The notes under the pieces are model-generated. The model worked only from the letters and a program-made list of their open reading frames with translations, was not told the origin of the DNA and made no database searches. A stretch of DNA of 63,351 bases, counting the filler, from Pelomyxa schiedti (lineage: Eukaryota > Protista > Evosea): NCBI GenBank assembly GCA_020536535.1. It is 9 parts of 9 records of this genome, joined end to end, with 100 filler letters (N's around TTAATTAATTAA, not from the genome) between each part and the next. Parts side by side here need not be neighbours in the genome. Positions count along the whole stretch, not along the records: positions 18,720 to 31,513 come from JAHLWZ010001201.1; 8 more parts are not named here. One strand, given 5' to 3'. Position numbers and translations under genes: made by a program. Positions 5,181 through 31,513 of this stretch are shown here, piece after piece. Every line of letters begins with the position of its first letter. Position 1 is the first letter of the stretch.

Positions 5181-7856
5181 ATGCGGGCGTTGGTTTTATG
5201 TTTGGTGGTGGCGGTGTGTGGATACGGAGTTGTGGGAGCAGTAGGGGGCACGTTGTACGGTGACACGGTTGCATCGCTGTACGACCGGGTGATTGCGTCA
5301 CAAATGACAAAAACCGAGTCCGTTCTCTCGTTCATTGACGTGTTCTGACTTTTTTGTTTTCACCCCAGACCTTTTATCAAGCCATTCCATTGGCAAGAAC
5401 AGAAGGGAATCTTCCCCAGTGATGTGCTCTTTAACTTGCATGGAAGGCCTGGTATCACATCATATCCGATTTGGATGAAAAGCCATTAACAAATGTCATT
5501 GTTTTTATTTTAGTCATTACTGCTACAAGGCGGGCACTTGACACTCCCGATGTAAATGCATTTGTTACATTGTGGGTGATGAATACCCTTTTGGAGGCAC
5601 ACGCCATTGGCGCCATTAACTTGGACCAAGATGTAGTTCAGAACGCAGTTACTGCCATTGTGGATTACCAGTAACTTGAGCTTTCCCTTTCCCTTTATAT
5701 TGTTCATTCATCATCTATGCAGAGACAAGAATTATCCAGATAATATGCGGCAAACTTTTTGGCCGCAAAAGCTTATCAATGGAACTTGGGTGTGCAATCC
5801 AGAAAACGTTCTCGGGATGTGTGATGACATGGAGGGCTTTGCCGAGCTTGTAAACTTTGACCTTAAGATTCGTTACACTAAATTTCTTTTAAGGTGTTAA
5901 CAGTCCTTGAGGATCTGGACATACTACCGTTCATTCAAGCAATGACAGAAATTATGATTGAAGTGATCGAGGGATATCGGCCTTACTTCCCAATCCCTGC
6001 CGACTTTGATGACAGTTTTACTAACGTTGGTTTTGGCAACTTCCTTCTGTACCTTGCTTCGGACTTCCCTCAGGTTTACTTTTACATGCTCCACTCTTGG
6101 CTAACAGTCATTCATTCAGGCTCAAAAGGCTTGGGCCTCGGCAAATGAAAACCCAGCAACTCTTTGGGAACCAACTTTGAAATACTCCTATCAGCCATTC
6201 TCTTCCGATTTCAACCTCAACAGCATCGATCCTCGCACCTATTACTTTGCTCACGAGTTTCTTGAACAACTCTCAAAGAATGAATCTTTTGTACTCCCAA
6301 GTTTGCGTTCCTCTTCACTCTTTTTTCCTCAAATACTTTTAGCAACTTGGATATCAAATATTGATGAAAATAGAGAACTCTTTTACGAAGAAGTAGCAAT
6401 GCCATTCAGAATGACCCCTTCTACTTTGAAACTCTTTTTAATATTTCCACAGACGTGAACAATGTTGATGCAAGTGTTACCGCTAATGTTCTTTATGGGC
6501 TGACTTCTCAAATTATTAGCAGCTTCCCAGATATTTCCTGGTTTTCGTCGGAGTTACAAGGACTTTACTTGAACACCTCCAGTTATATAGCTGTATGGTA
6601 GTTGAAGCATTCCTTGCCTGTTTTTACGTTGAAAGTGGACTATTGATTCAAATATGTTTGCCACAAGACCAGACCTGGGTTTATTGTACTACCCTGACCC
6701 ATATGCGTTTATTTGGTTTGTCTCCCGTACAGAGCGGTTGTTAAGTGACCTTGACCCTTCTATTTTGGCCAAGCTTCCGAGTGTTGTGGTAAGTTTTGCT
6801 TGTAGAAGCTTTTTTCGCTTACATTATGCCAGATCCAGGCTCATGACATGTTGTCAAATTCTCTGCACGGGGCCGCAACAGCTTTTTTGCTCTCGACTGT
6901 GACATCTAATGAGACAACAAAGGTATTTAGGTATGCACCTCAGCCATTGAATTTATCCCGTGTAGGTTTATTGGGAGCAATGGTTGGGGGCTGCAGACAA
7001 AGACAAGGATGGAAAGTAAGCTCTATTTAGATATCTCCCCGTTACATACACTCACTAGCCTTGAGCCACATGGCGACGATAGATTATTCACAACGGGAGC
7101 CGCTATCAATGATCTAATTAACATATGGACCAAGAAAGCTGGGTCTGGTCTCCAATGGAAGGATGACGCACCTTCTTCTGTTCAAAGTAATATCATTTTC
7201 TGCGTTTCAATAACTCAATTCATTCAAGGTCTTGTGGCTCAAGCTGCCGCATATCTAAATAGCACTGTTTTAAACCCAGATTCACTTTATTACAACGCAT
7301 TTTTTAGCGGTTCAGTGAAAGGGCAGGATTCCCTTCCCTATGCGTATGTAATTAATTCACCAATTGTTTTAATTAAAATTAAAAAACCCCAAACCTTTTT
7401 TGAGTTTGAGAACAAATGAACTCACAACAAATAGGTACCCGGCAACCTTCATGCAATACTTGAATGGCACCGATTTGCCACCTAATCCCTCTGCCTTGTA
7501 CATTACAACTGATCTTATTATTGCCATGCAAGGTTGCCCTAGTGCCGAAGACTATCAATCAATGGTAGATGAAAGGCACTTTGGTAACAATCGTCCCCAA
7601 TTACCCCAAAAACACTCATTTTCCATTCCTTACGATGTGACATAGAATACTACAAGACTCCGGTGCAATTTGATGGATTCAACGCGGTATTATTCTCCCT
7701 CTTTTCCATGCCACCCAGGAAACCCCTGGTTAGCAGCAAATCAATCGGTATAACCACACACAATAGGTTCAGATATTCCCGTTCTGGTCCGCAGCTCCCC
7801 TCACAATGTCCATCGACCTCCTGGCCCTCGCAAAAGTGGGTCTTATTATCAACTAA
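5181..7856 (+). CDS. Secreted uncharacterised protein, possible terpene-cyclase/prenyltransferase-like alpha-barrel (many exons)
   Basis: Signal peptide MRALVLCLVVAVCG; motifs IPADFDDS (DxDD), IDPRTYYF, NNVDASVTANVLYGL, LYYPDPYAF, DDRLFTT; ends FPFWSAAPLTMSIDLLALAKVGLIIN*. Confidence 0.6.
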
Positions 7857-7985
7857 CACAGTGAAATGTATTAGTTCGCTTCAATCTCAGAGAAGTTCCT
7901 CCATTTCTTTAAAAATTCCTAAATAAAAACAAGGGGAAGGAATCTACCCCTTCGGTACAGAACCGTTTCCCCGAGAAGGAAAAAA

Positions 7986-9170
7986 ATGAACTATGCACCC
8001 CCGACGCAACCGACGAGTACCACCGGTGGTGAATGGGCCATCGCCACGCACGTCGAATACCGCGACCAATTCGTTGCGCTGATGATGTCGTCGCACGCGA
8101 GGTGCGGCCGATCCAGCCCCGCGGCCGCCCTCACCACCTCGGCCCCGCTCATCGTGGAGTCCCTCCACAAGTCCTGTTCCGCGGGCCTCGTGGTCCTGCA
8201 GCCCCTCTACGAGGACTCGGTGGCCGTGGGGGTCTCGCTGGCCACGTTTGGCGTCACGAGCCCCCCGAAGCGGAGGACCAACTGGCAGGGAAAGGCCCTG
8301 GCAAAGTTCATGACGGGGACCCGCTGCCTGTGCGAGACCATGGGCCGCACGGACATCGATTTGTCGGTTGTGGACGTGGGGACTGGGGTGCAGCGCAGGG
8401 TGCTGGGCTTTGCCGGGGAGCATTTCTGCCGCGCAATGTGTGTGGGGGAGTGGGTCCTGGACTTCGATGGGTGGAGGCTGTGGAGGGTGACGGAGGACAG
8501 GAGTGATTGGTATCACAGGGACGGCGGCGGGCCGATGGTTGTTTCTAGGCCGAGGAGCGTGAGGCCTTTCGCGGGGATGGTGGGCCAGAGTTCTTTCAGT
8601 TTCAGGCATATGGCTGGCGACGTGGGGGACAGGTTTTTCGACATGAGGTGTTATGGGGATGGGCTGTGTGTGTTCCACTTGTTCGACATGGAGAAGATGT
8701 TTGAGAGCGGCGTGATGGAGCCCATTGACACTGTGAAGGTTCCTATTCCAAGAGCTTTGATCTCTCCTACTGCTCACTGTTTCTGGGCATCAAAAAGAGT
8801 GATGGTGCAATCAGAAGGCGTTTACTATGAGGTCCTAAAGGGTGGTGAGCTGAAGCTTCTCTGCAGAAACCCCGACCAGACCTTTACCATGCACAACTTC
8901 TGGATCGTGTTGAGGAAGGAGTCACCCAACCAGTGTGAATCATGGGATTTCTCGGTCAGCCCGAAGGCAGAGCAACCAACAGTGATCTCACTTCCAGAGT
9001 CGGACGACCCAATCCGCCTGATGAGTGGGGCCAAGCTCCTTATTGTGGAGGGAGGTTCTCGAGTTCACGCAGTTGACCCTGCCTCTGGCGCGATAATTTT
9101 CACGTTGATGGCCCCTCTCCTCCAGTCAGGGCCCCTCTGCATCATTAATAGCAAAACCTTCAATTCCTAA
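7986..9170 (+). CDS. HPRxG-family protein (F-box-like N-terminal motif, beta-rich C-terminus), intronless
   Basis: 394-aa ORF; RDQFVALMMSSHARCGRSSPA motif shared with other ORFs in the window; C-terminal VHAVDPASGAII. Confidence 0.75.
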   Translation: MNYAPPTQPTSTTGGEWAIATHVEYRDQFVALMMSSHARCGRSSPAAALTTSAPLIVESLHKSCSAGLVVLQPLYEDSVAVGVSLATFGVTSPPKRRTNWQGKALAKFMTGTRCLCETMGRTDIDLSVVDVGTGVQRRVLGFAGEHFCRAMCVGEWVLDFDGWRLWRVTEDRSDWYHRDGGGPMVVSRPRSVRPFAGMVGQSSFSFRHMAGDVGDRFFDMRCYGDGLCVFHLFDMEKMFESGVMEPIDTVKVPIPRALISPTAHCFWASKRVMVQSEGVYYEVLKGGELKLLCRNPDQTFTMHNFWIVLRKESPNQCESWDFSVSPKAEQPTVISLPESDDPIRLMSGAKLLIVEGGSRVHAVDPASGAIIFTLMAPLLQSGPLCIINSKTFNS

Positions 9171-18719: not shown

Positions 18720-21119
18720 GAACGAGACCAATGGGAATGACCGTTTCTCCAATAACCAGTCCCTGCCATGTCATCCGCACGTGCCCACCCTCCCACAATC
18801 CTCGTTCCACAATCTTTCCCAAGTGTGCACACCTGAATGAATAAATGTGGGAAAAGACGAAAAAGTAAGAATAATCAATAATCAAGAGATGACACACAAG
18901 GAGACCGTTTATCCACACAGAGTGATCACTAGAGAGTGGTCCACCTGACAGCTCAAAGTTGAACAGGTCACTCACAAACTCCGCTGTGACCGGCACAATT
19001 TCAAACGGGTGCTTCCACGTTCCTTCCTAATTATTTGTTGGTTATTGTAGTTGAGTTATGATAGGGTTTTGTAATGGCATTATTGTGGGGTCGGCCGGTG
19101 TTGAGTGAGGTGGTATGTCAGCGGGTTGAAATTGTTTTTGGTTTTGCTGGTGTGTTGTTTCCGGTACTTGTTGTGTGTGAAGTGCGAACTTGGAATTTGG
19201 ACTTTGGGCAAACACACAATAAATACGGGGTGACCTGGAGTCAAACAAACACCAGAGACTCGGCACATCGGTATTTCCGCATTGATGGCCTTCCTTTCCA
19301 CGTGGGATACCCGTTTTATCCCGGATTCGGTCTTCACGTGATCTCCGACGCGGACGTAACGTACAAGCCTGTATAGTGCCGGTTAGACCAAATCAGAAGA
19401 AATCGCACGCACTTGTGAGAACCATCAGCCATCAACACAGAGCCATCACCGGTGAAACACTTGCTGAACTGCCGGATTATGTTAACACAAACCAATTATC
19501 ACGTGTGCTGAGTTCTAACCTTTGACTCCTCCGAAGCTGGCAGAACACCAAACAGAGTCTCGTGAAGCCTGATGGCCATGAACCTCTCCTGTGGAGTGTA
19601 TGCATAGGCTCCACTCTGCAAGAACGCAAAACACTGAAGGTTTCCAACGTTTCCAGCCTCTGATTTCAAAACAAAGACGCGCTGAGATAAAGTGCGGAAG
19701 AAATGACAACAAACCGACACCGGAGACAAAATCTTCCAGAGATATCCACGGTCCGCGTTCATAAACAAGTGCATACGCAAAAGTGACTGATGCGGAGATA
19801 TTAGTGCTTGGGTTTGTTTGAGAAAAATCAACACACGAGAGCTGAGTGCCATGAAAGATTCGCTCCGCTCAATGTCAAAGTTACCAAATGCACACACCGC
19901 GTATTGGTTCAACGGAGGCCATTTGTTGTATGACATGTCAAACGACTTCTCGAAATTTGTTTGCCTTGGCTCCCTTTCCATCCCATCCACCTCGAACCCG
20001 CACCTGAATCTTCCAAAGAGCATCAAGATGTGCCTCAGAACATCAACTCCCAGAACGGAAAGAGGGCTTGTCTTCCCTGCACGAGGGTGAGCTCCACACA
20101 GGAACGATATGCACCTCTGGGAAACCAGCTTTCCTGATCCTGTTGTGTGAACGGTAAATGCTTTGTTTGTGTGGGTTTTGATTTCGAATAGCGATTCTGA
20201 TGGTGGGAAGGAGGGGTGAGGAGGGAGATGAATTTCACACTTTGAATCAACCTCCACGTGGGAGTTGACTTCATGAGGGCACAGACATCATCAGAATACC
20301 ACTCTGACCAGGCATGGTTGCATGCTGTGGAAACCAGTGTGCGGGTGACGCCAGCAGCGATGAGGCTCCTTGCCCAGGTCACACACCTTTTCTGCCTGTA
20401 CCACTTTATTCTGTTCTCCACCAATTGAATTTGGTCTTCCTGTGTTGCGGTTGATTTTTGGTTTTCTTCACATTAAATTATAGAGCTGTATGCAGTGGGC
20501 GCGGTTACTTTTGTTTTAATTACTCAATTATTTCATAATTATGAATTATGCGAAGAAAACGAACATTGAGAGGAGGAAGCCCAGAAGTGCAAGGCCTGTG
20601 GCACTCAGGTTCACAATAATAACCGTACCTCTTTGTCGCCGGAACGGCAGGCCTCTTCATTGAAAACTCCTTCATCACTCCCTCAAGCATCTCCCTTTGT
20701 TCCGGAGGAACATCACAATCGGCGGGGACTCCCATAAGCACCTCCTCCGGCATGTCCTCCCGATGATGGCCCATCACATCCACCCAGAAATTTTTGCCGC
20801 CGCGCGAGGAGGGTGCGTACCACGACGACCAGTGCTTTCCCATGAGTGCGGTGTAGTCCTCCCACTTCCTCTTCCTTATAGTTTCCGGCAAATACACCCT
20901 CATGCTGTCTGGATTGGGCATCATCGTGAGGGTTGTTTTGTCGTCGGGGCTCCCGAGTATCGACGCGATGACGAGCATCCTCTCGTCACATCGCCTCCTC
21001 TTGAGATCCCAGTTTTTTTCGAAGCCAGGTGGCTGGTGGTCAGCAGAAAACGAGAGCAATTGAGATGGCCATCGGGGGTCCACTTTCACACCAACGTCAT
21101 CGTAGCAATCCGTGGTCAT
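18720..21119 (-). CDS. Multi-exon protein: novel N-terminus, HPRxG (F-box-like) motif, C-terminal Vint-type Hint domain; 3' end cut by linker
   Basis: ORF 19499-20257 (FLCGAHPRAGKTSPLSVLGVDVLRHIL) splices via GT-AG intron 19469-19519 into KCFTGDGSVLMADGSHKLVRYVRVGDHV...LTPGHPVFI..WKHP..LFNFEL..DHSVWING..VCTLG. Linkage to the 20520-21119 ORF is through plausible in-frame introns and is less certain. Confidence 0.75.
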
Positions 21120-21380
21120 ATTTGTTGTACAACCAACCAGTTGTGCCGTTTATTTTGTCTGCTTACCAGAATGGAACTTTATGCGTGAGGGGGAACCTTC
21201 TGGTTCTGGACATAGATCAAGTGAACGTCTGCCATGTGTCTTGTTTGTTGGCAGCCAAAGGTGAGTTGGCTGAAGAAAAAACACCAGACCGCCGATAACG
21301 CAAATGACAGCGTTCCAGTTTTGATATCAGATATATACGTATCAGAACTTTTTTCACCGAAACAGAAGCGATCACAAGAG

Positions 21381-22481
21381 ATGAGTAAATAATTCAATTT
21401 TCTGGTTCGATCGGGGGGAAATTTGACAGTTCACCAATCTGGTGCACTTTTTTTTTTCCTTTTTGCCGAATTATTTTTCCTCATTTCCCCAGACTTCCTG
21501 ATGGGAGTCCCTGCCGTTGCTGTGTTTGTAGAGAATATGCCCACCTTGTGGGGTGCAGGTGATTTATGAAGATGCCCAAACGATCTTCCTGAACTGTCGC
21601 GCCCCTCGTGAGAAAAGGGTCAAATGTAATTTTACTGTGAAACTGTCGGTCGGGGATCAGATCAGAAAAAAAAAACGCGTTTTGTCGGGATTGACCTGTT
21701 CAACGTGCTTTTCATTTCCAAACTCCAACTCACTCCCACATGCTGAAGTGTTCTGACAGCATGGCACCACTTGGTTTGGGAATTAAGCCGCAGGAGTGAC
21801 GGAAACGATCTGTTAGGCGAAGGTTTTTTTTTCTCCTTCCCGAGATCGGATCGAGTGCACCAGGACCGCCGAACTGTGGGTCATGACGTGGCCCGTTGTG
21901 ACCACAAGCACGAGTACAGTCGTGTGAGCCAAAAGCCGGTGGTGCCGGATTTGCGACAGTTGAAGAAGAAAAAAAAACCCTTCTTCGCCTAACAGATCGT
22001 TTCCGTCAGTCTCAGGTGCCTCCTCCCTCAGCTCGAAGATTTTCACTACAGCTCACGAACATTGGCGATGAATACCTGGCGGCACTCATTTCGCCGACTG
22101 TCCCTGCCGGGTTTAAAGAAGAGCGAGTAGTGGGGGAACAAGTCTTTTTTCTGTCTTGGGCCGTTGGATCAAACCTGGGAACACGCGTTTTTTTTTCCCC
22201 TATCTGTAACCGGACTGATGGTTTCACAGTAAAATGACATTTGACCCTTTTCTCACGAGGGGCGCGACAGTTCAGGAAGATCGTTTGGGCATCTTCATAA
22301 ATCACATGCACCCCACAAGGCTGGCACATTCTCACCAAACACAACAACGGCAGAGACTCCAGTTAGGAAGTGGGTCGAAGTCCAAAAAGAAGAGGAAAAA
22401 AAATAAAACTGATTTATTTTCGAATTTTTTTTTAAAGGGGAACTGTCAAATCTGTACCAGAAAATTGAATTATTTACTCAT
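21381..22481. repeat. ~1.1 kb imperfect inverted repeat (foldback)
   Basis: 21381-21406 = revcomp of 22456-22481 (26/26); 21544-21643 vs 22221-22320 (98/100); 21797-21822 = revcomp of 21983-22008 (26/26). Confidence 0.95.
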
Positions 22482-22583
22482 GTCTTTGCCATCCATCGGT
22501 GATTTTTTTTGTGTGAATCTCTGACCGGAAAGAGTTGATTGAGAGAACTCCTTCTGCGAAAATCACAATTACGCTTTTCGGTG

Positions 22584-23912
22584 ATGGCGACAGCGGCACC
22601 AGCCCCTACATCCCAACAACCCCGTTTTGTGGGTATTTGTCAAGTACCCGTGAGGTCGCGGGATCAGTTCCTGGCCCTGGCCATGTCGTCGCACCCCAGG
22701 TGCGGACGCATGTGCCCCCTCACGTCTGCTCTCCGCTGTTGGTCTTCTTCCCATAATTCCGTACCATCGACACCACCGGGGGTTTGTTACGGCGGGACCT
22801 GCACGGATCCCTCGTTCGTTCCAAAGCTAGTGTGGGAAGCGGCCTGCGGTTCGCCATCGGTAGGGAGAAAAAGTACCACAGTTGACCTTGTAGTGCAACT
22901 GCAGCCCGAGAAATTCGGGTTGGCCACATTTGGTGTGTCGCCCCTGACACTGGGCGTGACTGAGGATGTGAGTGAATTGACTACCTGGGGGATACAATGG
23001 TGGCCTGGTGACCAGAACACCCCGTTGTTGTCAAGGGGAGCCCACTTCATGATGAAGAGGAGCCTGACAACTGGGGGTTATGGAGGAGAGCAAAGAAACA
23101 GCGCGTTCAGATTCGCGCTGTGCGATGCTGCCACTGGCGCCGAGTGCACGGAGCTGCTGGATTGTGGGATTCGCGGAGCGTGGAACTGCATGAACGAGAA
23201 GTGGTGGGTGTGCCAGGGCGCTAAGAATGCGGTTGTGGTGGTGAACTTGTGGGACAAGACGAGGCATGTGTGTGGGTGGCCTGATTCAATGTCCAGGGAA
23301 CTGCGGGATGTACAGAGTTGTTTCTTCAGCACAACTGCTTTGGATGATATGGTGCTTATTGGGAGTGCCAGGGTTAAGAGGAGCAACGCGTTCTGCTTTG
23401 CAACTGTTAATATTGGCCAGGCTTTCAGGGTTCTGAATCCAGAAAGCGCAACTAAATGTGTGATGGAACCTGGATTTGAGCTGAAGACTGGGCTGGTGTT
23501 GCACAGGTCCCAGACTGGCCAACGGGTTTTTGTAGTTGCCATTCACCCAAAAGATCATGCAGAGAATTGCTCAATAAATATCATCGAGGAATCCTCCGCA
23601 CCTCAAGAGCTTCACAAGCTGCCTGTTCGTAATGCCACACTGTCACAGCTGAATGGTTCGGTTTTCTGTATTGGAAAAGTATCTCAATACGAGCTCTGGG
23701 ATTGCCACAACACCAGCCAGCCAATGAGAGTTATACCACACAAAACAGCGTGGACATCAGTCACTGCTGAATCAGGATTACTGTTCCACACCTGTGCAAA
23801 CCAGATCAGAGTGACTGATTCGACTGGTACCATTACCATTCTAACAATCAACTTCAGTTCCAGAGGACAAAAAGTCACTCTCCTCAACGCAATGTCCTCT
23901 GGCACTGAATAA
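22584..23912 (+). CDS. HPRxG-family protein, intronless
   Basis: RDQFLALAMSSHPRCGRMCP; ATFGVSPLTLG; NEKWWV; LSQLNGSVFCI; AESGLLF; VTDSTG. Confidence 0.8.
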   Translation: MATAAPAPTSQQPRFVGICQVPVRSRDQFLALAMSSHPRCGRMCPLTSALRCWSSSHNSVPSTPPGVCYGGTCTDPSFVPKLVWEAACGSPSVGRKSTTVDLVVQLQPEKFGLATFGVSPLTLGVTEDVSELTTWGIQWWPGDQNTPLLSRGAHFMMKRSLTTGGYGGEQRNSAFRFALCDAATGAECTELLDCGIRGAWNCMNEKWWVCQGAKNAVVVVNLWDKTRHVCGWPDSMSRELRDVQSCFFSTTALDDMVLIGSARVKRSNAFCFATVNIGQAFRVLNPESATKCVMEPGFELKTGLVLHRSQTGQRVFVVAIHPKDHAENCSINIIEESSAPQELHKLPVRNATLSQLNGSVFCIGKVSQYELWDCHNTSQPMRVIPHKTAWTSVTAESGLLFHTCANQIRVTDSTGTITILTINFSSRGQKVTLLNAMSSGTE

Positions 23913-24112
23913 CGGAATGTTAGTTTCCGTCACCACACTTCCTTGTCATTTTCGTGTGAGTTGAGAAACCCCGAACAAGCTAATCATTTTAGCAAGTTCT
24001 AGAACGCAATCTTCTGCTGCTTCGGTAATTTTTTTTTCTCTTTTGCTGGTCACTGTTTACCAATCGGCGAAAGGATCAAGTTCAAAAAAACAAAAGATCT
24101 TTTGGATAAGGG

Positions 24113-25761
24113 ATGGCCACCGCAACACCGACAGCAGCCGCAACAGCGACACCAACCGATAAGGTCTACGACCTTGTAGTTCTTCCTGGTGATGGAATCG
24201 GAAAAGGTTTGTTTCGTTCCTACGGGATTTCGTTTTCGCTTCATTGTTTTTACGTATTTTTGTAGTTTGCTGCGAGGTGACCATTAAGGTTCTTGAGGCA
24301 GCTGGCCTTAAGGCCAACTGGCACCACGGAGACATTGGGTGGGAGTTCTGGTGCAACGAGGGTAACGCCTTGCCTCAGAGAACCCTGGACCTCATTGACA
24401 GATACCGCATTGTTCTTTTCGGTGCCATCACCTCCAAGCCCAAGGCTGCTGTATGCGTCCTGCAAGAATTGACACCTTCTAACTATTGTTCAGGCCGAGG
24501 CCGAGCTTGCCCCAGAGCTACGCGGAAAGGGCTTCGTCTACTACAGGTACAGTCACTTTCTTTTGGCTTCTTTCGTAACGTATGGCTAGCCCAATTGTGT
24601 CACTTCGACAACACTACGGGCTCGATATCTGTGTTCGCCCATGCCAATCTTTCGAGGGCAATCCCCTCAACTTCATCAGAAGGACTGCCACTGGCGGTTT
24701 CGAGGAACCCAGGGTACTTTTTCTTCTTCCTTTGTACCATTTCTTATAGCGGTCAGGTCGACGTGGTCATCTTCAGGCAAAACACCGAGTGTTTGTACTG
24801 TGGTGTCGAGTGGACCAATCCCCCCGATGCAGTAAGTGGAATTCCATGGAGTCTTCATGACAACTAACTTCCGATTTAGGTCTACAACTCCCTTATGACT
24901 CACCCCAAGATGAAGAACTTTGCCACAGTTCCAAGGCCCGAGCTGGCTGTTTCTTGCAGAATTTTCACTCGTGAGGCTTGCAGACGCATTTGCTCTGCTG
25001 CTTTCGAATATGCTAACAAGTATTTGACACATTCCCAACCTCCCCTACCTCCTAACCTTCCCATAGGTACGGTTACAGATCAGTGACTGTCTGTGAGAAG
25101 CCCAACGTCGTGAGAGAGACCTCCGGAATGATGGAGGAGGAGGCCAAGATTGCTCAGAAGAGGTTCCCACACATTCAGCTCTGGAGCACCAACATTGATG
25201 CCCAGATGATGTGGATGACCAAGAACCGTATGAAATTCTGTACTCCCTCGTGATTCAATGCTAACCTCTTCTCAGCCGAGGAGTACGGAGTTATTGTTTC
25301 CTCCAACATGTTTGGAGACATTGCCTCCGATGGCTTTGCCGGCCTTGTAGGTGGCCTTGGCTTTGCCTCCTCAGCCAACCTCGGCAGGTACTTGTACTTC
25401 CTTTCCGCACACAACCAAACACCTGCTACAAAACAAACAAACCCCAACAAACACTCAAATTCCCCACAGAGACATTGCCGTCTTCGAGCCCACACACGGG
25501 TCCGCACCCAAGTACGCCGAGCTTGTCCCATCCATTGTCAACCCAATCGCCACGATCCTGTGTGCGTGCCAGATGCTGGACTACATGGACCTCAAGCCCA
25601 TGGCCGACAAGATCAGAGTTGCCATCCGCCGCGTCATCCGCGAGGGCCGCGTCCGCAGCTACGACATGATGAAGCTCCGCGGTGGCCCAGAGGTCATTGC
25701 CCAAGGCGCTGCCTCCACCCAACAAATCGCCGACGCCATCATCGCCGCTTTGGCTCTGTAA
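24113..25761 (+). CDS. Isocitrate/isopropylmalate dehydrogenase family (beta-decarboxylating dehydrogenase), multi-exon
   Basis: VLPGDGIGK, LFGAITS, SPIVSLRQ, VIFRQNTECLY, EKPNV, NIDAQMM, SNMFGDIASD, FEPTHGSAPKYA, NPIATIL. Confidence 0.93.
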
Positions 25762-25892
25762 TAGTCTCCATTTGTGCCACTCTTTGCCTTTGTACTTTGG
25801 TGCATTCGTGCCAACGGTTCAATAACCAAAAATTATCAATCAAAGTTCTTGCAAAGGTTTTTTTTTGTTACAACAAAAGGGTTATATTTTTT

Positions 25893-27352
25893 TTATCTTG
25901 TAAAGAGGCGAACGAAGAGGGCGAGGCCGGCACATAGGATGCCAACAATTAGCATTATGAAGCATATCTTGTACCGTGTTTTGGACTGGAGTACTGCGGC
26001 CTGTAGAGACAAATTGTTAAACAGCGGTGTTTGTTTGGGGTGCGGCTTACTTTTTCTATCTCTTGGCGTGCTATTTCAACTGCCTCATAAGTTTTGTCAA
26101 TGTTGTAGTCTATACGGTCAAGAATAGTGCCTTGCTCAGCAATAAGTAACGAGATGTCTTTTTTTTGTTTGAAACTGTTATTAGACACAACTACAAGGAG
26201 AACATTTAGAGAACCTTTGACAATTTCGGACAGCTCCACAATAGACTTGGCAATTTGCTTGATATCTCTGTATCTCTGTTGTGCGTCTCGGTCTGTGGCT
26301 TCTAGAACAGCGAGTTGCTCCGGGGTGAAACCCTTTTCCAGAGGAGTTAGTAAGAATAACGAAGAGGGAGTCATACCTTGTCCTCAAAGTCTTCAATATT
26401 AAAGCTCGACTCGGTACTAGTTGCACTAAGGGCTGCTGATGATGGTGAAGATGATGCTGAGGCTGATGACATTGAGGGGGATGATGTGTACGTATCCCTG
26501 AATTTGCTGTCACGACTTCTAAGCTCTGTTGTAAGACTGTATTTATTTTGGTTTAAGTGTGACTGTAGTTGTTTTGGTGTCCTTCCTGGCCATCCCGAAA
26601 CCTCAAGAAAGGAGACATACTTGTGAGGTAGTGCTGCTGTGCTGTTTTGAATAGCTGGGTCAGTTCTTGAAGTTGGGTAGCCAACGCTGTTTGAATGTTG
26701 AGAGTCATTTTGATGTAATTGCTCGATAATGTCGTGGCATCGGCGGTCGGAGGGAGTTTATTCAAGGCTTTGATTTTTCGTTGTGTTTCTCCAAATAACT
26801 GTGTGCGAGTCAAACTCCAAGTGAAGTCCTGTCATTGCCTACCAAGGATATTTCTGCCGTGGAAATTTCAATTGCATGGACGTCGTCGATGGAATCGTCA
26901 CCAATCTCCACAAGAAGGTGATTGTTGTGTAACCTCTTCAAATCGCCAACTGGGACAATTTAAAACCGGTGCAAAATGTAAAGAAGCAGTACTTTTATGC
27001 TTCAGGGTGGCTAGATCGTTTTGCACTGACTCGACTCTCACCATCCACTCAGGCGGAAGTGTGAGTTCCACAGAACCATTTTGATCTGGGTTGGCAAGGT
27101 CTTGTATAAGCTTTGTGGTCTGGGGCTGTCGCACTGATGTTATTTTTCGCAAATGGCTAAAATATGATACCTGGGACAGAGCTCTCATTTGTACATCTCC
27201 AGGTGCTAAAATACAGTCAAGGAAATAAGAACCAAAAAAGAGGAAGTACCTCTCTTTTTAGCGTAGTTCTCTCTGTAGCGTAAGAAATCCGTGGTACGGT
27301 TTCGCGTCGCCCCGCCTACGACACCAAGTACGCCCGCACTTCCGACATACAT
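25893..27352 (-). CDS. Syntaxin-16/Tlg2-like Qa-SNARE
   Basis: N-peptide ATRNRTTDFLRYR; LPPEWM; SNARE motif IKQIAKSIVELSEI..LIAEQGTILDRIDYNI; C-terminal TM. Confidence 0.9.
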
Positions 27353-27956
27353 TGTGAACAAAAGCCTCGAACAAGAAAGATCTACATTCATGTATAGTCA
27401 GTGGCGGCACTCACGACAACAAACCCGGAAATGCGACAACACGTACGTGCGTTCTCTAGAACCACGAAATTTTTTTCAAATAATTGGAAGTGATTACTGC
27501 CGCTGAGAAGACATCCCCCTATCACTCTTGAATGATGCATCCGTAGTCCTGCGGAGGACACTACATGTAGTGGGATAAGCATTGGTGTTTGCAGGAGGGG
27601 TTTCTTCTCAAGGGTTATCACAAGTTTGCCTGGTTCGTCCTTGTGGAGGAACATGATGGAATCAATCAGCGAGAGATCAAGTGTCCGTCGGACGAACTAA
27701 GCTCGATTAAGGGACTTCACCATTCCCAGCCAAAGATCAACCCTGCAAATTGGAAAACTCAGATGGAATTCCTTACCCTGCTTTCGCCTTCCCCAAAGTC
27801 ATTTTTTCGCCTTCTTGACGAAGAAGCTCCTTTCTGTGCGGCCTACAACGTGTCACATTTTTTTTTTCCGTTACGGTATGCGTATTTCATTCTCCTCGTT
27901 TACCCCCTCCTTTTCCTAACGTTTTTCCCCTACAACAAGCAGGCATGCTACTTACC

Positions 27957-29936
27957 ATGAACCCATCGCGCCACAGCAACAACACCCTCACCACCACATC
28001 AGCATTTAAAAAGACAGGTTCGGGCTCGTCGTGCCGCGCCGCGTCGGCGGTGCTGGGCACCCCGCCGTCGTCTCCGTCGCCACCCGTCACGTTCCTACAC
28101 ATCGTTCCCGCCCCATTCTCCCCTCCCGTAGTCTACGAAAACGCCCCAATAAAAAATCTAATGAGCACAACAACAACGGCCCCGAGCCCAACCGCCGACC
28201 AACGCGTCGCCCCGGCCCAGCGCACGCACGCCCCGCGGCGCGCTCACGTCCCCTCTCCCACATTTGAGGACGAGGACTTCGCCGACGACGATGTCCTTTG
28301 CAGCGGCGGGGGCGTGCGCGTCGGCAGCGGCAGCAACAGCGTCGGCCCAAAACACGGGCTCCCTCATCAACAACCCAACACCAACTCCCCAATCCACCAC
28401 TCACACGCCACCAACAGCACCACCAACAACAGCAACAACGTCAACCGGCAACAGATGCCACCTGCGATGCCGCCGGCGGCCTCGGCCTCCGCTTCCGCCA
28501 CTACCACCACTACGACCACCGCATACTCCCATAAGCCGCACCACAAGCACCACTACAGCGGCGACGGGCCGTCATCGACAGTCACGACGGCGCTGCACCC
28601 ACAATGTAATTCTACCACCGCAATGGGCTCACATTCCACCGGCGTTGCCGTTGGCATTGGCGCGCAAGACTTGTTGGATGATGACATCCCATTATCGTCG
28701 TCATCAGGGTTTGTGTCTGCGTTGGGTTCGCAATCCGCATCGGGATCCTCTATAATAAGTTCAAATAGCAGTACCACAACTAATACTACTACTGCAAGTG
28801 CCAAGCACAAAAAGGCTATGGATAGCAGCAGGAGGCACAGGCTATCTGCAAAAGCAACACTAATTACACCAACTGACAGTAACACCAACAGCACACCCAC
28901 ACTGTCTTACTCCTCTGATGATTTCTCGCTTTCAAAAAGTGAGCAGCATAAACACTCTACGCATTCTTATACACAGGACCAGAACCAGGATTGTTCTCCC
29001 CCACTCGCATCGTCATACACATACTCATACACGCGCCGGTCATCATCTCCCCCATCTACTTGTTCTACTACCACAACTACCACCCAAAGCAATGCCAGAA
29101 GTGGAATGGCCAGCAGGGAGGGTTCTAGAAATTCTGCCTCCAGCAGCCGCCTTACCAGTGCAAATTCTAGTACTATCACCAAGGAACGAGGCCGGAGCCG
29201 AAGCAGGTCTCCACCCAAGTTCAACCCCAACCTCGATGCAAATTCATCCTGCCCAAGTATGGCCCCCCCGGCCATACAGGAACTGTTCCCTCAGACGTCC
29301 CCGCGGCAGTCAAATAAAGTGATAGACCCCGCTGTGCAGAGAGTGGACAATGCCAAAGCCAATGCAGCAGTGTCGGTCATCTGCCGGGCCATCGACTCTA
29401 AGACTGGCAGTGATGCGACCTTTGCGGAAGTAAATGCTGCGGTCAGCCACGCCGGGACTGCGGCACTGCAGGAAAAATTGACACCTGTGGCTGTGCCCAC
29501 AGAGCCATACAAAGCAAAACCTGGAAAAGCGACTTCACCCCCCGTGCAGATCCAATCTTCTGCGGTACCTTTACAAAGCGAAGTTACGGACAGTAGCAAC
29601 AAAAGACGCCTCCAAACCCGTATGATTCCACCCATAAAATAAATACTAAATCCTCTATCTCAACAACAAAATTTTCAAACTCATTGAATTTTAAATTAAT
29701 TGCGCACCCATAATAATCCCGCAGAAGCTCTACGCCGTTCCGGTGAATCAGAAGGCGCTGGTCACCTTCCCCCGATCGGCCCACATCCGGGTGTTACAAC
29801 TACAAAGGCAGTCTCTGTCCCAGCACAGATTTCACCTCCGTCGATCGATGATTTGAGGCTAGATCCGGCCAGACTTGCCTACGAGCGCCGCGAGGTTAGG
29901 GAGCTCGCTCAGAAACTGGCGTCTAACTTCTCTTGA
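27957..29936 (+). CDS. Low-complexity S/T/P/H-rich hypothetical protein
   Basis: 565-aa ORF plus a probable last exon at 29730-29936; no recognisable domain. Confidence 0.55.
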
Positions 29937-30329
29937 ACCCTGGGCTCACCATTAGCTCACCAACACCCCCCCCCCAAAAAAAAAACATAACCTAAAAACA
30001 CTCTGTAGCACAACCCCACCCACATACACAACAACATGTAACCACCAGAGAACTTACTGTTTATTAAGTATGGGTATTTCATTTCTCCAAACCATCACTA
30101 AATCGACCTATGCCCTGTGTGGAGGCTTTGCACCATCAACATTCTCCTCTGCCATTGGCGTCTCCCGATCTCACTAGATTTGTACTGCTTTCCTATTTTG
30201 TCAATGCGGTATCCTCAACAAAAATTGGAACCCTCTTCTAATCGCTCTACAAAAAAAAATCAAACCGGAAAACAAACAACTTGCACATCGTCGCCCTTTC
30301 GTCTCACACGTCGCGCAACCCAAACAAAC

Positions 30330-31513
30330 ATGGCCACGACAATTGTTGCTACATCCGAGGTTACCTCTTCTGCCCCAGCCGCAGTTATCCCTACTGTTGT
30401 TGAGGGTACGAATTTGAGGCCTGTCGTGGAAATACCGCACGAGAGGAGACCAGAGGGCATCGTGCGGGGATACGCGGGAAGCACCCTCAAGATCGATCTG
30501 ACCAACAGAGCCGCCATTGTAAAGCCCGTCACCGAGGAGATGAAACAACTGTTCACAGGTCAACGCTCTTAATTCGTTCCCTTCCTTCGGGGTTTGTTGA
30601 TCACACTTCGCAGGTGGAAAAGGATTTGACTTGAAACTTCTGTGGGATTCTGTACCTGCCAGATGCGCTTGGGATGACCCATTGAACGAGGTAACAAGTG
30701 AGGTCCTGTTTTAAAAAGTGACTTTGGTCTAGATTGTACTGGCATCTGGGCCCCTTGGGGGAGCTCCAAATTATCCTGGAGCTGGAAAGTCCATCGTTGT
30801 TGGCATTTCCCCTCTTACTGGCCATATTGTCGACAGCAACGTTGGAGGGTTCTTTGGGCCCTACCTCAAATGGAGTGGGTTCGATGCCCTCGAGATTCAA
30901 GGTGAATTTGATGCAAAATTCCTTTTTCCGCTAACAGTAGACAAAAGGGAAAGCCGCTGTGCCCCTTGTGGTACTGATAGATGGAGAGACAAACAAAGTC
31001 GTGTTCTACGAGGCACACGATCTCCCTGAGGATTCATACATTCTGAGTGAGTGCCTTACCAATTTCTTTGGAGGCGAAACTGGGCAGAGGGCCATTAGCG
31101 TCGTTACGGCGGGTCCTGGTGCCAAGCGAAGCCTGTGGGGATGCGTCAACATCTCTTGGTTTTTTATTCATCGCTGTAGCGTCGTCACTAACCCCCAGAA
31201 AAAAGGTATGACACACCGCGAAAATGCTGCCGCCGAAAGCAGGCCGGCAGGGGTGGCCTCGGAACTGTATTTGCGACTAAAAACGTTCTCGCTGTTTGTG
31301 TCAAGAGCCCAAGGATGCCAAACCAAGCGGAAACTGTGGCTGATATCGAAACTCTGAGGGAGGTTGGAAGGATGCACAGTACTGAAATCGCCACTTTGGA
31401 TCGCAAGCAAAACGAAATGGCTTCAGTGGGTATGACTTATGACACAGAATGACTCTGCCACGGTTACACGGTTATCTGGTTCAGGAAATCGAACAGCTTT
31501 CAGTGGCTTGGCT
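30330..31513 (+). CDS. aor: Aldehyde:ferredoxin oxidoreductase (AOR, W/Mo-bis-pterin family), N-terminal part; at least 4 introns; truncated by linker
   Basis: GYAGSTLKIDLT, FTGGKGFDLKLLW, SGPLGG, ISPLTG, DSNVGGFFGPYLKWSGFDALEIQGKA, AGPGA, QAGRGGLGTVF. Confidence 0.92.

Follow-up and report, generated by a model that had tools for sequence, protein, structure and literature searches.

The window analyzed in this study is a stretch of 63,351 nucleotides (nt), filler included, from the genome of Pelomyxa schiedti (GenBank assembly GCA_020536535.1). At the end of the 12794-nt contig JAHLWZ010001201.1, which occupies positions 18720-31513 of the window, it contains the 5' part of a gene of the family of aldehyde:ferredoxin oxidoreductases (AORs). 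P. schiedti is an anaerobic free-living archamoeba that was sequenced from single cells and has 7.43 introns per gene, 98.4% of them with GT-AG borders (PMC8887013). The AOR-like frame opens with an ATG at 30330, after which the peptide stretches switch among frames, as seen in a three-frame reading of 30330-31513. All AOR-like pieces are linked by a single exon model with four complete GT-AG introns (55, 42, 46, and 47 nt) and a fifth donor, and removal of these introns would leave one frame collinear with the homologs. The model consists of five exons on the plus strand (30330-31429), that is, 910 coding bases or about 303 codons, and five introns per 303 codons agree with the genome-wide intron density. 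The original prediction, that AOR N-domain motifs are interrupted here by at least four GT-AG introns, is thus confirmed, and the observation is real far beyond chance.

Exon 1 (30330-30558) carries the start codon and codes for a Ser/Thr/Ala/Val-rich N-terminus and for the first part of AOR domain 1; it ends in phase 1. It is followed by intron 1 (30559-30613, 55 nt, GTCAAC..TCGCAG), exon 2 (30614-30690, 77 nt), and intron 2 (30691-30732, 42 nt, GTAACA..GTCTAG), the latter inserted in phase 0 and containing in-frame stops. The most conserved part of domain 1, including an Asn that matches Asn93 of the Pyrococcus enzyme, is encoded by exon 3 (30733-30901), and the variable part of the same domain by exon 4 (30948-31158), which ends in phase 2 within a Trp codon; intron 3 (30902-30947, 46 nt, GTGAAT..CAAAAG) lies between them. 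Intron 4 (31159-31205, 47 nt, GTTTTT..AAAAAG, phase 2) precedes exon 5 (31206-31429), encoding the end of domain 1 with the KQAGRGGLG loop and a linker into domain 2. The first 12 bases of intron 5 (31430-31441) read GTATGACTTATG, with the donor GTATGA at 31430. The G+C content is 0.35-0.49 in the introns versus 0.48-0.55 in the exons, and each of the four complete introns would introduce stops or frame shifts if read through. The gene annotated in GenBank at 30330-31452 starts from the same ATG, and its 310-amino-acid (aa) product, which contains the AFOR_N domain only, has exactly the length obtained when the five exons are translated on through intron 5 as far as the TGA at 31450-31452.

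All searches, alignments, and trees were run on single exons, without joining them into a spliced protein. The Pfam domain AFOR_N (PF02730) is matched collinearly by exons 2, 3, and 5 (profile positions 29-52, 54-108, and 174-197, respectively), the strongest match being that of exon 3 (E 5.4e-15, 56 bits, with a gathering cut-off of 29.8). Exon 3 also aligns to residues 59-112 of the Pyrococcus furiosus AOR (1aor) with E 1.6e-8, and exon 5 to residues 182-208 of the same protein and, likewise from about residue 182 onward, to the Haloferax tungsten enzyme 9q1t. A tblastn search with P0010, a full-length bacterial homolog of 712 aa, produced four collinear high-scoring segment pairs covering its residues 16-281; exon 1 is represented by 30447-30560 and exon 4 by 30944-31162. 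In blastp comparisons with 122 full-length prokaryotic homologs the five exons abut with no gaps or overlaps (on the homolog L012, at 31, 65, 90, 147, and 216). The exons cover the AFOR_N domain and about 40 residues of the linker and domain 2. Pelomyxa retains the GRGG loop and an Asn at the position of Pyrococcus Asn93; the positions of Pyrococcus Arg76 and Arg182 are occupied by Lys, as they are throughout the clade of long AORs described below. Arg76, Asn93, and Arg182/Ala183 of the Pyrococcus enzyme are reported to contact the pterin phosphates and Mg (1aor structure, Chan et al. 1995). At the level of sequence similarity, the window gene is confirmed to be the N-terminal part of an AOR-family gene.

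The stretch is present in four sequencing runs (X1-X4) from one sample, and the contigs of these runs were compared with positions 25600-31513. The runs are DNA-like: their contigs retain the introns, and none of them is recorded as RNA. The contigs of all four runs diverge from the window after 31441, and X1 record 4 goes on from there with 1839 different letters. The last 72 bases of the GenBank contig (31442-31513), which hold the annotated stop at 31450-31452, are covered by a separate 327-nt contig (31437-31513). Since the run contigs leave the window at 31441, these bases, annotated stop included, are not the true continuation of the gene and probably result from an assembly mis-join. 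After the final Gly of exon 5 the homologs continue with T-x-HLV-x-x-MND-x-DLLP, which the window tail does not encode. Of the stretch originally given for the gene (30330-31513), only 30330-31441 consequently belongs to it. The run-contig sequence past this point (about 1.87 kb) would, judging from its length, be approximately of the size needed for the remaining ~400 codons and their introns. A 3' half of the Pelomyxa gene was sought by exact look-up of the exon-1 open reading frame (ORF) and by a word search with the 132-aa exon-4 ORF, neither of which gave a match, and by a word search with a 188-aa exon ORF of the ortholog introduced below, which retrieved prokaryotic fragments only and no Pelomyxa protein.

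The runs X2-X4 share a haplotype that differs from the window by about 1-3%, and X1 matches the window; the haplotype could reflect heterozygosity, or the individual cells that were sequenced could have belonged to different strains. The only exon indel in the AOR region is the in-frame insertion of ACA at 30338 (exon 1) in two runs. Intron 1 has an insertion of CA at 30601 in X3 and X4 that would break the frame if it were coding, and intron 3 has one-base deletions at 30938 and 30940 in other runs. Thus, frame-breaking variants (2, 1, and 1 nt, versus 3 nt in the exon) are confined to the modeled introns. A poly-C/poly-A homopolymer tract at 29958-29992 separates the AOR gene from the upstream gene, and most run contigs end there. 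The sole contig bridging the tract is X2 record 9 (29020-30278), which overlaps X1 record 4 (29993-31441) and so links the AOR gene to the remaining contig. Consequently, the AOR gene is physically linked to clear eukaryotic genes (SNARE, Iso_dh, and Vint), which lie on the same contig, with run contigs overlapping across 29958-29992.

A scan of exon 3 against 1.84 billion representative proteins returned 314 matches, 55 of them below 1e-10; the best have 55-86% identity and 55-91 bits, whereas the canonical AORs of about 600 aa, including 1aor, score about 38 bits. The top match, P0003 (86% identity), sits on contig_75 of the ENA assembly ERZ21831100 (locus L001, 1-8803), where the AOR frame is split into ORF pieces. 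The L001 gene is near full length (5701-8017, about 697 codons) and has six GT-AG introns of 35-42 nt. Since the same contig also encodes a 610-aa Pro/Ser/Thr protein of EPSKPSTAN-like repeats, along with fragments of the Ras-family, WD40, and GH99 types, we consider it eukaryotic. Intron 1 of L001 (5938-5979, 42 nt, phase 0, after ...NE) has the position and phase of window intron 2, and intron 2 of L001 (6363-6403, 41 nt, phase 2, in the Trp of ...ISW) those of window intron 4; window introns 1, 3, and 5 are not present in L001. Over 256 aligned codons the two genes have 76.6% protein identity and 66% DNA identity (84% protein identity in exon 2, 71% in exon 4, and 75-88% in exon 5), with a proportion of synonymous differences (pS) of 0.92, that is, saturated, and a proportion of nonsynonymous differences (pN) of 0.16. 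Shared introns, saturated synonymous sites, and a conserved protein imply entry of the gene into a eukaryote, followed by intron gain and by inheritance in two lineages, and the conservation itself, in spite of synonymous saturation, argues for function. Taken together, the comparison of Pelomyxa with L001 points to a lateral transfer that is old and whose product purifying selection has preserved.

The C-terminal half of the family is represented in L001, where four exons tile positions 3-340 of the AFOR_C profile (PF01314). The Fe-S region of this protein, DGCWMGCPMACAH with a later GLC, aligns to the region of Cys288/291/295 of 1aor via P0010. Judged through the same P0010-1aor alignment, L001 has the Cys-x3-Cys-x3-Cys motif, VDGPEYET, CDAYGLDTIS with the DxxGLD pterin motif, and the histidine region KGPQHDE, and thus the sequences that stand for pterin binding and for the catalytic Glu and His of the family. 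One exon of L001 (7271-7528, 86 aa, KGPQHDE...GLCKLPWND) is 97-98% identical to long AORs of different prokaryotic phyla, with 55-65% identity in the remaining protein.

The closest prokaryotic relatives of the two eukaryotic genes form a clade of "long AORs" of roughly 660-790 aa (about 710-730 aa in P0010 and P0033, and up to 862 aa in P0023), distinguished by about 22 extra N-terminal residues and the Cys-x3-Cys-x3-Cys motif. Named matches of this type come from metagenome-assembled genomes (MAGs) of Patescibacteria, Wirthbacteria, and Desulfobacterales. A scan with one genome per prokaryotic species yielded 551 relatives, and the best 80 of them are mostly Desulfobacterales/Desulfobacteraceae, including Desulfosarcina variabilis and Desulfamplus, along with MAGs of Bathyarchaeia, Heimdallarchaeota, Thermoplasmatota, and candidate phyla radiation bacteria. 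The prokaryotic long AORs have 55-62% identity over all exons, with 55-59% as the best prokaryotic value, and exon 2 is 80% identical to L010 and L012. NCBIfam has no equivalog for the long AORs, PRK09849 matching P0010 and exon 3 weakly, and among solved structures there is none for the clade, the nearest ones being 1aor (179 bits to P0010) and 1b25. To our knowledge, no member of the long-AOR clade has been characterized.

Several other homologs were considered as eukaryotic copies and rejected. L002, L003, L004, and the P0193 contigs carry bacterial genes broken by frameshifts, and L143, a partial match of 76% identity from the JGI metagenomes, is an uninterrupted bacterial gene. A scan of the JGI metagenomes revealed no closer eukaryote-like copy, the best match over the whole exon being 55% identical. 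On L002 a ThiS/MoaD-like gene (8009-8206) directly follows the frameshift-split long AOR gene of this bacterium. An AOR gene next to a pterin-sulfur carrier gene is the usual association. Another architecture was observed among the top matches of exon 3 in P0025, P0027, P0040, and P0045 (664-902 aa), where AFOR_N alone is fused to NuoE/NuoF-like modules of the 24-kDa/51-kDa NADH dehydrogenase type with Fe-S motifs. We know of no description of this AFOR_N-NuoE/NuoF-like architecture.

A maximum-likelihood tree was built on 150 columns from the longest of the natural L001 exons, to which window exon 5 was added in a row of its own. In this tree the sequences of the two eukaryotes pair with each other (SH-aLRT 99) and fall within the long-AOR clade (100), apart from the canonical AORs, which supplies the placement among AOR clades that had been proposed as a check of the gene, within the limits of a single-exon tree. 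Their nearest neighbors are L006, L010, and L012 (SH-aLRT 89), from MAGs labeled Pseudomonadota or Enterobacterales. We do not propose these as the donor group, as the exon-by-exon score ranks are inconsistent and the support is lost in a reduced, outgroup-rooted tree. Nor is the present Syntrophus endosymbiont of Pelomyxa supported as a donor, since the Syntrophaceae homolog L073 clusters with the bulk of the Desulfobacterota and not with the two eukaryotic sequences. The donor would thus have belonged somewhere in an assemblage of anaerobic sediment prokaryotes, with no subgroup singled out. Outside the eukaryotes, the closest relatives are prokaryotic without exception, and the best reading is still a lateral transfer, as originally suggested for this gene.

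Comparison with known systems places the gene in the same three-domain family as P. furiosus AOR (1aor) and formaldehyde:ferredoxin oxidoreductase (1b25). 1aor matches P0010 at a distance (179 bits, E 1e-51), in an alignment that takes in the Fe-S Cys region, GPEYE, the DxxGLD pterin motif, and the region of the catalytic His. Relative to 1aor, the long AORs are about 100 aa longer, start about 22 aa earlier, and have Cys-x3-Cys-x3-Cys in place of Cys-x2-Cys-x3-Cys, and the Pelomyxa copy differs further from the Pyrococcus AOR in its eukaryotic host and its introns. The prokaryotic long AORs (P0010, L006, L010, L012, and L018 of Desulfosarcina variabilis) have the N-terminal lead-in and the motifs in common with the eukaryotic copies, but they are uninterrupted and occur in operon-like contexts, whereas the Pelomyxa and L001 genes contain spliceosomal introns of 35-55 nt. 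Two characterized proteins were considered as the closest relatives and set aside. YdhV of Escherichia coli (700 aa) is of similar length and shares the AFOR_N domain, but only its N-terminal 128 aa align (66 bits) and the Cys-motif exon does not; it is not an ortholog. The class II benzoyl-CoA reductase BamB (4z3w), a member of the AOR family common in the same Desulfobacterota, is much more distant, its matches to exon 3 (E 5e-4) and to P0010 (86 bits) being confined to domain 1. YdhV, also an AOR-family protein, is reported to bind a Mo-bis-pyranopterin, and therefore membership in the family is no proof of tungsten.

In the Pelomyxa protein, 46 residues precede the GYAG start of domain 1. 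The prokaryotic long AORs and L001 have about 21-22 recognizably similar residues before the same start. Thus, the predicted N-terminal extension of about 45 aa exists, but only about 21-25 of its residues are specific to Pelomyxa, and the rest is common to the prokaryotic clade. The Pelomyxa-specific part lacks basic residues, contains much Ser, Thr, Ala, and Val, and carries the length variant of one additional Thr; it does not resemble a typical targeting presequence. If translation began instead at an in-frame ATG 126 nt upstream of 30330 (30204), the protein would gain 42 residues, many of them Arg, Lys, Ser, or Thr, that resemble a presequence. The A-rich segment 30204-30329 may also be a simple 5' untranslated region, and no variant between the runs decides the matter.

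The other multi-exon GenBank genes on the contig encode a Vint (Hint-like) domain protein, the hypothetical protein Pelo_16850, an Iso_dh protein, a SNARE protein, and a 565-aa Ser/Thr-rich protein, with the AFOR_N gene as the last. The 552-aa Vint protein is annotated at 18771-21119 on the minus strand; individually, the ORF pieces of this region have no Pfam match despite the annotation. Pelo_16850 is encoded on the plus strand at 21883-23912, and its 457-aa ORF (22539-23909) is 100% identical to the GenBank entry. The syntaxin on whose presence the eukaryotic origin of the contig had been argued is borne out as a multi-exon SNARE/syntaxin gene on the minus strand (25893-27654, a 424-aa GenBank product), one ORF piece matching Pfam SNARE (E 3.5e-6) and another one Syntaxin_2 (E 4e-4). 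Iso_dh was likewise confirmed by Pfam matches on ORF pieces. In the haplotype of runs X2-X4, the 565-aa Ser/Thr-rich ORF has in-frame insertions of 3 and 6 nt at 27988 and 28420.

We interpret positions 30330-31441 as the 5' part of a nuclear Pelomyxa gene that was acquired by lateral transfer from an anaerobic prokaryote with a long AOR, gained introns, and has been maintained by purifying selection, its product being, by family, a tungsten- or molybdenum-pterin AOR; we assign this reading a probability of roughly 0.8. It is supported by the assignment of the N-terminal part to the family, by the introns and the eukaryotic surroundings of the gene, and by the ortholog and the selection. Several observations weigh against it. 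In the Pelomyxa genome no more than the N-terminal third of the gene can be read, the GenBank product ends at 310 aa, and splicing and expression are presumed, the runs being of DNA type. L001 has two frameshifts, one near 6453-6456 and one at 7910, the latter inside an A-run. The published table of host genes (PMC10579272) gave no MoaA, MoaC, or MoeA for the host in term searches or in its cofactor list, although this table is a curated selection and absence from the genome is not implied. Finally, substrate and metal would be extrapolated from distantly matching enzymes (179 bits to 1aor).

Part of these observations would be explained if the transferred gene were a decaying or truncated relic, non-functional in Pelomyxa, of which an N-terminal fragment is left: the contig breaks off behind exon 5, AFOR_N is the only domain in the annotated product, the ortholog is frameshifted, and the gene is missing from the published metabolic table. 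We consider this unlikely, because all five exons are open and keep the conserved residues, pN relative to L001 is 0.16 against a saturated pS, and the variants between runs preserve the reading frame. The contigs of four runs also continue past 31441, in X1 by 1.87 kb, with room for about 400 codons and introns. As for L001, the frameshift at 7910 is in an A-run, and bacterial genes of ENA assemblies with nearby accession numbers are frameshift-split too, and so we read the L001 frameshifts as long-read errors, though decay is possible. The annotated 310-aa product might alternatively be a stand-alone AFOR_N protein with a role other than that of an AOR, as the GenBank model stops at the TGA at 31450-31452 and AFOR_N without AFOR_C is known from the four NuoE/NuoF-like fusions. 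This is quite improbable, given that the stop lies 21 nt beyond the GTATGA donor in a tail unsupported by the run contigs, and that exon 5 already encodes some 40 residues of the linker and domain 2, as in the full-length homologs, breaking exactly where these go on.

The remaining alternatives concern the origin of the gene. Pelomyxa cells are full of prokaryotic symbionts, one of which, Candidatus Syntrophus pelomyxae, has an aor gene (a putative pseudogene), and the Logan contigs break at 29958-29992, so that prokaryotic DNA could in principle have been mis-assembled onto an amoeba contig. This is hardly credible for a gene with four GT-AG introns that carry stops or frame shifts, unlike prokaryotic genes, and share two positions with a contig bearing Ras-family and WD40 fragments; moreover, X2 record 9 and X1 record 4 overlap upstream of it, and the Syntrophaceae homolog lies elsewhere in the tree. 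Vertical inheritance from an archaeal (Asgard) ancestor of eukaryotes, with no lateral transfer, draws on the long AORs of the same clade in Heimdallarchaeota MAGs and on the lack of a firm position for the eukaryotic pair inside the clade. It is nevertheless very improbable: only two eukaryotic contigs with the gene occur among the inspected matches of the large protein search, the scan of the JGI metagenomes revealed no closer eukaryote-like copy, neither tree joins the pair to the Heimdall clade, and eukaryotes are listed with the sulfite oxidase, xanthine oxidase, and MOSC families only (PMC6147048).

The metabolic setting is described in the analysis of the Pelomyxa consortium. The host annotation table includes the formate dehydrogenase FdhF (Pelo_6878), a MobA-like molybdenum cofactor (Moco) guanylyltransferase (Pelo_18822), the Moco sulfurase ABA3 (Pelo_8692), and four xanthine dehydrogenases (Pelo_13746, Pelo_13022, Pelo_4906, and Pelo_3762) (PMC10579272). 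Based on these entries, the host appears to use pyranopterin cofactors. FdhF with a Moco guanylyltransferase constitutes prokaryote-type bis-molybdopterin guanine dinucleotide machinery, which is unusual for a eukaryote. All three symbionts carry Moco genes, and Ca. Syntrophus pelomyxae has tupA and tupB, as well as an aor split into two ORFs and annotated as a putative pseudogene (PMC10579272). Pelomyxa itself has a cytosolic pyruvate:ferredoxin oxidoreductase (PFOR), alcohol dehydrogenases (ADHs), aldehyde dehydrogenases, and eight [FeFe]-hydrogenases, and the route by which cytosolic ferredoxin is re-oxidized was called unclear by the authors (PMC10579272). The laterally acquired PFOR, [FeFe]-hydrogenases, and FdhF (Pelo_6878) of Archamoebae are, like the AOR, nucleus-encoded redox enzymes of prokaryotic type in a ferredoxin/H2 economy (PMC10579272); unlike them, the AOR is missing from the published reconstructions, where EC 1.2.7.5 is listed for the Syntrophus symbiont only and is not among the host entries of the same table (PMC10579272).

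By analogy with the family, a full Pelomyxa protein, with the complete C-terminal half presumed from the homologs, would contain a bis-pyranopterin cofactor with tungsten or molybdenum and a [4Fe-4S] cluster, and would interconvert aldehydes and carboxylic acids with ferredoxin as the coupled carrier. Such an enzyme could link the reduced ferredoxin made by PFOR to the aldehyde/alcohol pool, in either direction. It might act as a ferredoxin sink, reducing acids to aldehydes, which ADH would then convert to alcohols; or the oxidation of aldehydes to acids might supply reduced ferredoxin for H2 production, pulled by the methanogenic symbiont. More tentatively, and at odds that we put somewhat below even, P. 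schiedti and at least one other eukaryote may run a working bis-pyranopterin AOR beside FdhF and the MobA-like protein. It would be the first AOR-family, and possibly tungsten-dependent, enzyme of eukaryotes, with pterin or metal perhaps obtained from or shared with the endosymbionts, all three of which have Moco synthesis and one a tungstate transporter.

In a comparative survey, eukaryotes had three pterin-enzyme families only (sulfite oxidase, xanthine oxidase, and MOSC), whereas AOR was treated as prokaryotic and largely tungsten-specific and the Entamoebidae were found to have lost Mo use; eukaryotic genomes were queried in this survey with the same three families only (PMC6147048). The main texts of the papers on the Pelomyxa genome, the Pelomyxa consortium, and the Mastigamoeba genome contain no mention of AOR, tungsten, or molybdenum, and the supplements of the Archamoebae papers list AOR for the symbiont only. 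A search of the literature on AOR or tungsten in protists, Archamoebae, or lateral transfer found nothing relevant, a weak negative given that the colon spelling "aldehyde:ferredoxin" could not be matched. The gene is already public, being annotated in GCA_020536535.1, but solely as the truncated 310-aa AFOR_N product. This truncated annotation and the absence from published reconstructions make the gene easily overlooked. What is new here is that a known enzyme family has a member in a domain of life where none was expected, and there is good evidence for a real and selected gene.

If true, an intron-bearing, selected AOR in two eukaryotic genomes would extend the family, so far known from bacteria and archaea alone, and possibly tungsten biochemistry, to eukaryotes. 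It raises the question of how the cofactor is provided in a cell crowded with symbionts, which synthesize Moco and take up tungstate. In the Pelomyxa consortium model (PMC10579272), a route through AOR and ADH would be a candidate sink for cytosolic reduced ferredoxin.

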